In this document: positions 12,401 through 15,400 of the stretch, one piece after another
Layout: every line of letters begins with the position of its first letter
Numbering within the stretch: position 1 is the stretch's first letter
DNA from: Octopus sinensis
Taxonomy: Eukaryota
DNA length: 64,000 bases
Reading direction: 5' to 3'
Assembly: GCF_006345805.1 (NCBI RefSeq)
Contig: NC_043009.1
Span: 64,356,001 to 64,420,000, forward strand
The notes under the pieces: model-generated
Database searches by the model: none
Told to the model about the DNA's origin: nothing
Seen by the model: the letters and a program-made list of their open reading frames with translations, nothing else
Translations under genes and position numbers: made by a program

Positions 12401-15400
12401 TCCAGCGTCCGGGCATCTACGATTTACAACGCCAGGAAGGCAGAAATCACGTGATCTGGCAGACGCGATGATGGCGACGGTGAGTAATTTATGTCCACGC
12501 TGGCGATGTAAACAAGTGTTAGCCGAGAGTCAATATGAGAGTTTCTTTCTTGGTAACTGTCGCAGGATCCTGTGTTCTAATGCATTCATTTTAAGTGGGG
12601 ATACCTTATATGTATGTATGTATGTATGTATGTATGTATGTATTACCTTATATGTATATATGTCATTATTCAGTTTATTTCAAGATTTCTTACCAATAGA
12701 GAAGGAACCAGTTTCTAACTTAGATCCAAGACTCTTTCGTATGTATATAGTACAAAAATTATTAAAAATACGATGAGGTAAAACAAATAGTGTATTAGGT
12801 TTACGCTCAGGAAAAATAGAAGGAAAAGTCTTTTATGTTCCGTGAGTACTCTCTTCTACGGATAAACGGGGAGAGAAAAAATTAGAGAGCGAAAAGGACA
12901 AACGAGTCTCAGTCACTATCAATATTAAATTCTTATAATCACTTCCAATATCACACACTTATACAGACACACCCACAAACTCATTTCTACGCATCTTAGA
13001 AAGAAGGGAATCAAACGAGCTAATGTTTGAGACAACCGAGAAATTTGGAGTAAAGACGGCATGTCACTGATGATGTCGGGAATGGTAACGAAAGGACTCT
13101 GAAAACCCAACTTAATAAATGATTGATTAAAAAGTTTGATCATTAGTTAATTGGAAAATTGGTTGACTAGATATTTGAAGGAATGAGAATGACCCCCTTC
13201 GGTCAGACAATGACCATGGTTTGCACCTAGAGAGTTAACCCTCTGAGGCACAGTCTGGGCAAGTTGTTTTTATGGTAGACCAGCAGTCGCCATGCATACC
13301 GGCCTCCTCTCTCCACGTCACTGTTGTCCAAGGGAAGGCAAGGGCCGATACAGCTTGGCACCTGTGCGTCGCAACTCGTTTCTACAGCTGAGTGAACTGA
13401 CACGTGAAATAAAGTTTCTTGCTCAAGAACACAACACGCACCCGGTCCGGAATTCGAGCTCACCACCTCAGATCGTAAGCTCGACGTCTAACCACTGAGC
13501 CACGCGCCTTCACACTAGATATTTAATGATATTTAAAAAAAAAGCAGTAAAATGAGACCGGTAGATGTGTTTCTTATTGACATTATGACCATGACCATCC
13601 CAAGTGACAACAACGTGGTTCAATACACGATTTCACATCACGAATCGAGAAAAACTAAAATACAAAAGCTTAATCTTTACCATTGAGCGATATTTTCTAT
13701 CAATCTCTCAAATTACATAAAAAAAACTCTGCATCGGTGTTAATTAATGTTTTTGATTCGTCTATGATCAATTTTGATTATATTAATAAAACCTCAATAC
13801 TACATAGATTAAACAAAACGTTTCATAAGAGAAGCAACTGGAATGTTATAATAAGACAAATCTGGACGGCCATTTTCATATCCTACTCAATGTGAATGTT
13901 TTGTTAAAACACCAAATACAGCAATATTTGCCATAAGAAAGCTTTTTGTACAGACGGCAATGAATATCCTACATTCAGTAGGATCAACATCGCCATTTGG
14001 TATTGATGCAGCTTCCGTCGCTAATATTTATATTCAGATGATTTAATAAAAAATAACGATAAGTTCATTGACGAATGTCAGACATTCTGAATGAATTCAA
14101 ATTTGTCCTTAATTTAAAGAGAAGAAACGAAAATATAGTGGAAAATACTAGTGACCCTCAGAGAAAGGTAAATATTTAAATTTATATCTCTTCAGCCTTT
14201 AAGATCAGTGAATATATATATATATATATATAAACCAGCTTAGAGAAGAAGAAGAAACGAAACGAAACGAATCGAATCGACGCGAAGGCGCTCAGTCATA
14301 CAATAGTGTAATAAATAAAATATATGCATACATACAAACATATTTGTACGTACCTACATCTACATGTATATATACATGCATATATAAATATATATACGTG
14401 TGTACAGGACACCACAAATAGACGTAGAACTCAACGAGAAACGAAAACGTAAAAACAGCATGGAACGGACCAATTTTTTAACAACGAAAAAACAGAGTAC
14501 AAGACAACTACACAAGGAAAAATCCCCTTCATCAGCTGTCCCTATATATTACACGAAGAAATAAATTACAAAAATTTCGTTAGCCGGAATCTATACAAAT
14601 ACAGAAAGTGGACGACTTTATCTACATTGGTACCCCTAATACACTTGGTTTATTTCTTTTCATTGCCGTACATTTTAATCATTACAATGTTCCACTAAAC
14701 TTCGTATTTCTTCTGCCACATGGAATTTTCGGTCTAGAAAATCAAAAATACCTTTCTCACTGCATAAATGATCATTAAATGCTGTAAACTGTGGAATTGA
14801 TTTTTGCAAAGATTTAACGTTAATCAGGAAACTAAAATTTATCTACAGCATCTACTGAAATTTCCGTTTATTGAAATCACGATTTTATAAGACTTAGGGG
14901 GCGTATATATTTAAGGAATAAAGATTTTAAAAAAATAAACAAACAAAAAAAATACGAGCTACAACTCCTTACCTCAGAGACAATAGATGACAGATGGTCA
15001 GAGTAGAACTTTCGACCATTATTACACGGTTCCTTTGTAGAATTACTGGTGGGAAGGATATAAAATCCTTCTTTAGTATCCAGGTTATACACAGAGCATT
15101 TCTCATCTTCGACAGCTGCCTTGTTTAAGAATTCATCCAAAGTGATATTTGGTGGAATCAAAGATTCATTGAAATTTGAAGGATAACAAGCAAACGGAAC
15201 GCGTTCTCTTATAAATACCATCGTTAAAACAGCTGGGGCGTGAAATATTACAAAAATTAAAATATAAATTGTAAGTTTCTTTTGAAATAGACCATATGTT
15301 CCACATTTCTTCAATATTTCTTCTGTAATTTCAGATACTGACAAATCTAAAATTGAAATAAATCAAAGACTGTTTCGTTAATAAATTTCTAATGTTAGTT

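Follow-up and report, generated by a model that had tools for sequence, protein, structure and literature searches.

The two neighbouring SLC22 genes in the 64-kb stretch of DNA analysed here (the window), called copy A and copy B in the following, have diverged from each other to two very different depths: an old one (K ~0.3-0.4) in the upstream flank and in three short coding islands, and a young one (~0.04-0.05) elsewhere in the gene body. The sharp mosaic boundary inside exon 2, which an earlier note on this DNA had described, is real (19 differences in 114 nt vs 1 in 228 nt, Fisher p = 4e-9), and the patch in TM1 which it delimits is not unique, as two further islands were found on scanning exons 2-5. 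Old and young divergence occurring together is the signature of an exchange of sequence between paralogues. It is likely that the duplication is old, that the gene body was later homogenised by interparalog gene conversion and that the three islands escaped.

The gene pair and its family

The window has a GC content of ~36% and is rich in microsatellites and transposon remnants; it resembles invertebrate animal DNA, perhaps that of a cephalopod-like mollusc. Comparing it with itself reveals a segmental duplication (copy A ~197-18615, copy B ~45955-60225), which consists of collinear blocks at 86-94% identity with non-homologous sequence between the blocks. The two copies are tandem same-strand SLC22 (OCT/OAT/OCTN-like) genes on the minus strand, 38.6 kb apart. 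Copy A is truncated by the start of the window, so that its exons 6-9 lie outside, while copy B is complete and its exons 1-9 encode a protein of 558 aa. Both gene models were put together manually with the help of open frames and splice signals, and AG/GT is found at every junction of the rebuilt genes (Table 1). The conserved block 16467-16603 was considered as exon 1 and rejected, because stop codons interrupt each of its usable frames. The exon lengths 104, 155, 172, 215 and 109 nt found here are presumably typical of vertebrate SLC22 genes.

Table 1. Positions of the exons, divergent islands and flanking segments of the two SLC22 copies in the window.
Feature	Copy A	Copy B	Strand	Remarks
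Exon 1, coding part	17136-17199	57338-57401	(-)	64 nt = 21 aa + 1 nt; identical in A and B
Exon 2	14973-15346	53599-53972	(-)	N-terminal segment, TM1, extracellular loop; AG acceptor, GT donor, open frame
Exon 3	11735-11838	52570-52673	(-)	104 nt; TM2 and start of MFS A-motif; one silent difference
Exon 4	2754-2908	48690-48844	(-)	155 nt; island over TM3/start of TM4; TM4 core conserved
Exon 5	230-401	45988-46159	(-)	172 nt; TM5 with Y253F, island over TM6
Exon 6	off window	44732-45007	(-)	
Exon 7	off window	40460-40674	(-)	215 nt
Exon 8	off window	34595-34703	(-)	109 nt
Exon 9	off window	33795-34002	(-)	ends in stop
Island 1	15201-15314	53827-53940	(-)	TM1; 19/114 nt (16.7%); dS 0.36, dN 0.148
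Island 2	2815-2897			TM3 and start of TM4, exon 4; 26/83 nt (31%); dS 0.56 (exon 4, 5' half)
Island 3	232-295			TM6, exon 5; 17/64 nt (27%); dS 0.24 (exon 5)
Loop-coding part of exon 2	14973-15200		(-)	1/228 nt; young baseline
Copy-A-specific sequence	15395-16466			48 nt upstream of exon 2; holds LINE reverse-transcriptase fragment; ends A/B homology beside the TM1 island
Upstream flank, collinear, single-copy	17256-18615	57455-60225		69-79% identity

Several other elements accompany the gene pair. The sequence that separates copy A from the 3' end of copy B contains degenerate pieces of a piggyBac-type transposase (29988-30658, minus strand; DDE_Tnp_1_7, E = 9e-13 and 2e-7). Intron 7 of copy B contains a Mos1/mariner HTH_48 ORF (38969-39232, minus strand), which is flanked by direct repeats of 337 nt (37191-37527 and 39521-39857, 98.8% identical); ORF and repeats together (37191-39857) may be a recent composite element. 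A repeat of ~400 nt occurs three times (21765-22169, 40743-41170, 58479-58902), with 92-95% identity and in mixed orientation.

The protein spliced from exons 2-9 of copy B matches the Pfam profiles Sugar_tr with 106 bits (cut-off 22.3) and MFS_1 with 77 bits (cut-off 33.4). Solved SLC22 structures (PDB) align with it nearly end to end, OCT2 with the lowest E-value (3.7e-69), followed by OCT3, OCTN2, OCT1 and OAT1; these matches have alignment lengths of ~430-526 residues and E-values from 4e-69 to 1e-43, and the OAT1 alignment spans residues 9-534 of the query. A PDB search using the N-terminus alone gave no match. Read from the translation, the SLC22 signature [ST]IV[TS]E[WF][DN]LVC before TM2 takes the form SSIVSEFDLVC, and the A-motif, which is located between TM2 and TM3 (PMC8154325), is present as GTLSDAFGR(F/Y)K; PESPRWL can be found as well. 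The Y-E/D-R/K motif sits on TM7, TM8 and TM10 (PMC10940649), and copy B has Tyr, Glu and Lys at the positions of OCT1 Y361, E386 and R439 as the counterpart of Y-E-R, a statement that applies to copy B only because the respective exons of copy A lie off the window. The loop between TM1 and TM2 comprises ~80 aa with three N-X-S/T sequons and four Cys, which are common to both copies. Judged from their sequences, the two copies are members of SLC22.

Copy B shares SSIVSEFDLVC, DAFGR, PESPRWL and the Y/E/(R or K) motif with the vertebrate proteins OCT1-3, OCTN2, OAT1 and URAT1 and stands at about the same distance from each of the OCT, OCTN and OAT branches. Its extracellular loop, with 4 Cys, is shorter than in vertebrate SLC22 proteins. 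The OCT subfamily is recognised by an acidic residue at D474 in TM11, paired with K214 in TM4. In copy B the D474 position is occupied by Arg, encoded in exon 9, and the K214 position by Ala, encoded in exon 4; in addition, it has His at the OCT1 positions F32 and Q241 and Tyr at W217. Because of these residues it is probably not a classical organic-cation transporter, and the Arg and the Ala suggest that its substrate is an anion or zwitterion and not a cation. According to the alignment, OCTN2 likewise has Arg in place of D474, and so, presumably, does OAT1.

Divergence along the gene body

Exon 2 was compared by pairwise alignment (14543-15394 vs 53168-54021), and synonymous and non-synonymous changes were counted according to Nei-Gojobori. 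The counts given in the earlier note could be reproduced throughout. The only difference in the loop-coding part is GAT/GAA (D/E) at position 15105, and the 19 differences in the TM1 island divide into 12.0 non-synonymous and 7.0 synonymous ones, a divergence which also exceeds that of the introns (p = 2e-5). The coding part of exon 1 is, as had been claimed, identical over its 64 nt, and the single silent change in exon 3 is TTT/TTC. Neither the absence of silent changes from the loop (0 vs 2.1-2.7 expected at the intron rate) nor the one silent change in exon 3 (vs 1.2 expected) is significant, and both segments are young sequence under purifying selection. A separate, very recent conversion of the loop was considered too, but is unneeded because zero silent changes do not differ significantly from the 2.1-2.7 expected. 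It is the islands, rather than the loop, that need explaining.

Outside the three islands only 8 of 544 nt of coding sequence differ. The assignment of the islands to TM segments is based on the A-motif between TM2 and TM3, on the OCT1 residues K214/W217 (TM4), Q241/F244 (TM5) and P271 (TM6), and on the MAFFT alignment. Third codon positions have diverged by 13% in TM1, 32% in TM3/TM4 and 30% in TM6, vs 0-3% in the other coding sequence, and dS in the islands is 4-10x the intron level (Table 1). The excess of silent changes over the intron rate is significant in each island (Poisson p = 5e-4 for TM1, 2e-5 for exon 4 and 4e-4 for exon 5), the synonymous counts being small (7-8 per island) and partly derived from multi-hit codons. 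In the islands dN is 0.15-0.30 and dN/dS is 0.41-0.53, a ratio at which positive selection is not detectable and which is no higher than that of TM1 across the family. Raised silent and third-position divergence together with a dN/dS of 0.4-0.5 indicates that the boundary in exon 2 marks a difference in age and not a burst of adaptation limited to TM1.

The aligned introns are 5.4% divergent overall. The high divergence at 3462-3561 was left out of account, as this segment of intron 3 is a CT-rich microsatellite (3462-3561 in copy A, 48960-49100 in copy B), which has expanded unequally in the two copies and inflates the apparent divergence. For the blocks within 197-16603, intron divergence is 4.2% in the block interiors vs 8.4% at less than 100 nt from the edge of a homology block (p = 8e-7), which reflects either conversion tracts that stop short of the edges or a mutational effect associated with indels.

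Upstream of the gene body the two copies are much less similar. The divergence of the collinear flank is 23.5% at 17256-17624 and ~31% at 18101-18615, which means that the duplication is older than the introns suggest. The identical 64 nt of coding exon 1 lie between this diverged flank and the gene body, placing the upstream limit of homogenisation near 17255.

Searching for homologues with exon 2 yielded only two short genomic ORFs from another species, and the same search with exons 4 and 5 gave no match. The contigs L001-L006 (Logan runs SRR11869384-94) contain at least two exon-2 paralogues with 77-83% nucleotide identity to A and B. Two of these contigs, L001 and L006, served as outgroups, which cover exon 2 only, and comparison with them controls for local differences in rate. 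The two outgroup paralogues are uniformly diverged from each other, without a mosaic. A and B differ from each other at 19 sites in TM1 and from L006 at 27-29 sites each, whereas the corresponding numbers for the loop are 1 and 32 (Fisher p = 1.3e-4). When the variable sites were permuted in a Sawyer-type run test, the observed run was reached in 131 of 20000 permutations. As is characteristic of concerted evolution, the depth of divergence is heterogeneous relative to the outgroup, and the introns and most of the exon sequence are closer between A and B than the islands are, silent sites included.

Origin of the mosaic

According to the explanation which we favour, the tandem same-strand SLC22 genes would stem from an old duplication with a neutral divergence of ~0.3-0.4, and later interparalog gene conversion (concerted evolution) would have brought the gene body to ~4-5%. 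The homogenised stretch would begin shortly before the start codon and include exon 5 at least, and the segments 15201-15314, 2815-2897 and 232-295 would have kept the old divergence since they were not overwritten. The step at 15200/15201 would then be the edge of converted sequence and not of a selected functional module.

The location of the islands is consistent with such a history. Each of them touches an exon end with a break in A/B homology only 15-48 nt away (15394/15395, 2923/2924 and 197). The remaining five exon ends carry no island, and homology is unbroken for 50 nt around them. That the islands occupy all three of the eight exon ends with a nearby break has a chance of 1/56, judged post hoc. 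The conversion history is inferred, and so is the reason why the islands persist: a copy-specific insertion nearby would break homology and hinder conversion, and, as the doubled intron divergence near block edges suggests, conversion tracts would seldom reach the last ~100 nt before the heterology, leaving the old sequence in place. The LINE-type RVT_1 fragment in intron 1 of copy A (15485-16446, minus strand, E = 3e-6) starts ~140 nt upstream of exon 2 and is absent from B. Exons near block edges are ~2x as diverged as introns at equal distance, so shielding by the breaks alone is insufficient for the islands, and their persistence may also owe something to selection that opposes the overwriting of residues with different functions, an addition which we regard as conceivable but somewhat doubtful. 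Besides this and the small synonymous counts, the following speaks against conversion: remnants of the old intron might be expected between the young blocks, where a sensitive search found no weak collinear homology, and the link of the islands with the homology breaks was spotted after the fact.

The lack of residual old homology in the introns between the blocks would fit better if the duplication were young and the islands were foreign tracts, brought into A and/or B from one or more older SLC22 paralogues at other places in the genome by ectopic gene conversion. Family-conserved sequence bounds each island and could have provided microhomology for the tract ends, and at 5 of the 19 TM1 sites A matches one outgroup paralogue and B the other. 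Such an import is nevertheless improbable. It needs three independent events, predicts no link with block edges although 3/3 islands are found there, and leaves the collinear upstream flank of 69-79% identity unexplained; moreover, there is no donor in the window, and the outgroup contigs are not donor-like (27-36 differences per 114 nt). When the outgroups are used to polarise the 19 differences in TM1, 7 are derived in A, 4 in B, 5 are split and 3 uninformative, which does not separate import from escape.

Sequence exchange would be dispensable altogether if the duplication were recent and the TM1 residues that line the cavity had since diverged adaptively, giving two transporters alike in scaffold and loop but with different substrates. 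The dN of the islands does exceed the intron divergence, two OCT1-pocket residues differ (V61I at C36 and Y253F at F244), and TM1 has T, C, S and Q in copy B vs I, F, A and P in copy A. We consider this quite improbable, given that the islands show a 3-7 fold rise in silent and third-position divergence and a dN/dS below 1, that TM3 and TM6, which hold the strongest islands, are peripheral helices, that the F32 equivalent is invariant and the F32/C36 face shows no enrichment of TM1 changes, and that the upstream flank shows the duplication to be old. Near-identical duplicates are generally hard to assemble, and falsely identical and falsely divergent stretches could arise if a duplicate had been assembled wrongly or polished too far, or if two haplotypes had been joined in tandem. 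No tool result favours such an artefact, and it is very unlikely: the copies are 38.6 kb apart with the 3' exons of copy B between them, they differ in transposon insertions and by 4-5% in their introns, neither has a disrupted frame or splice site, and identical runs of ~100 nt occur in the introns as well.

Substrate specificity and comparison with known systems

TM1 was mapped by the phmmer alignment with OAT1 and by a MAFFT alignment with human OCT1, in which the OCT1 sequence used matched published work at 14 of 14 named residues. The changes I55T, F56C, A58S, P59Q and V61I align with A30, A31, A33, P34 and C36 of human OCT1 and hence flank the F32 and C36 equivalents, just as the earlier note had placed them. 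Its further conclusion, that the copies share scaffold and loop but differ in substrate specificity, stands only in part: the boundary is real and the changes are next to F32/C36, but the F32 equivalent itself is His57 in both copies, and islands are also present in TM3 and TM6. On an ideal helical wheel, which assumes a regular helix, two of the seven TM1 changes (I50V, V61I) fall within 60 degrees of the F32/C36 face, as expected by chance. Among the 39 amino-acid differences in exons 2-5, 16 belong to TM3 and TM6, the latter a peripheral helix according to the MFS topology used here (PMC8154325). Within these exons only V61I (C36) and Y253F (F244) affect pocket or gate residues named in the OCT1 papers, and both changes are conservative. 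TM3, like TM6, is a peripheral helix of the MFS fold. The invariant His57, the chance-level helix face, the small number of pocket or gate changes and the large share of changes in TM3/TM6 therefore weaken the proposed specificity difference, which is possible but has no support beyond the chance level.

That the three islands are co-adapted parts of the N-terminal bundle, kept different by selection against ongoing conversion, is unlikely. If they were, this would point to residues including V61I (C36) and Y253F (F244) as setting different substrate or gating properties. Should selection keep the islands, the pair would amount to a natural chimera experiment, narrowing the determinants of specificity or gating in an invertebrate SLC22 pair to ~30 residues. 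For now, the pair is chiefly of value as a warning: a sharp-edged block of amino-acid differences in a duplicate that looks recent can reflect the history of recombination and not adaptation. Dating these genes or calculating their dN/dS has to be done segment by segment.

The pattern is of a well-known kind, found here in a new gene pair, and does not on its own argue for a new substrate specificity. Duplicates under gene conversion are described by the 'peak of divergence' (Teshima-Innan) model, for which the red/green opsins are the textbook case (PMC3924837). Like A and B, the primate red/green (LW/MW) opsin genes are arranged in tandem, with introns and most exons kept similar by conversion and divergent exon stretches with sharp flanks. 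In the opsins, however, the two residues at the centre of the peak have been proven to affect the spectrum, and conversion has been proven there by orthologues. Unlike in the opsins, the A/B islands are found where homology breaks off, and peripheral helices contain two of the three. Residue 36 of OCT1 differs between species (human Cys, mouse Tyr), which changes the affinity for fenoterol (PMC10567722). V61I aligns with this residue, which sits at the upper end of the pocket, and the Val/Ile exchange would be far milder than Cys/Tyr.
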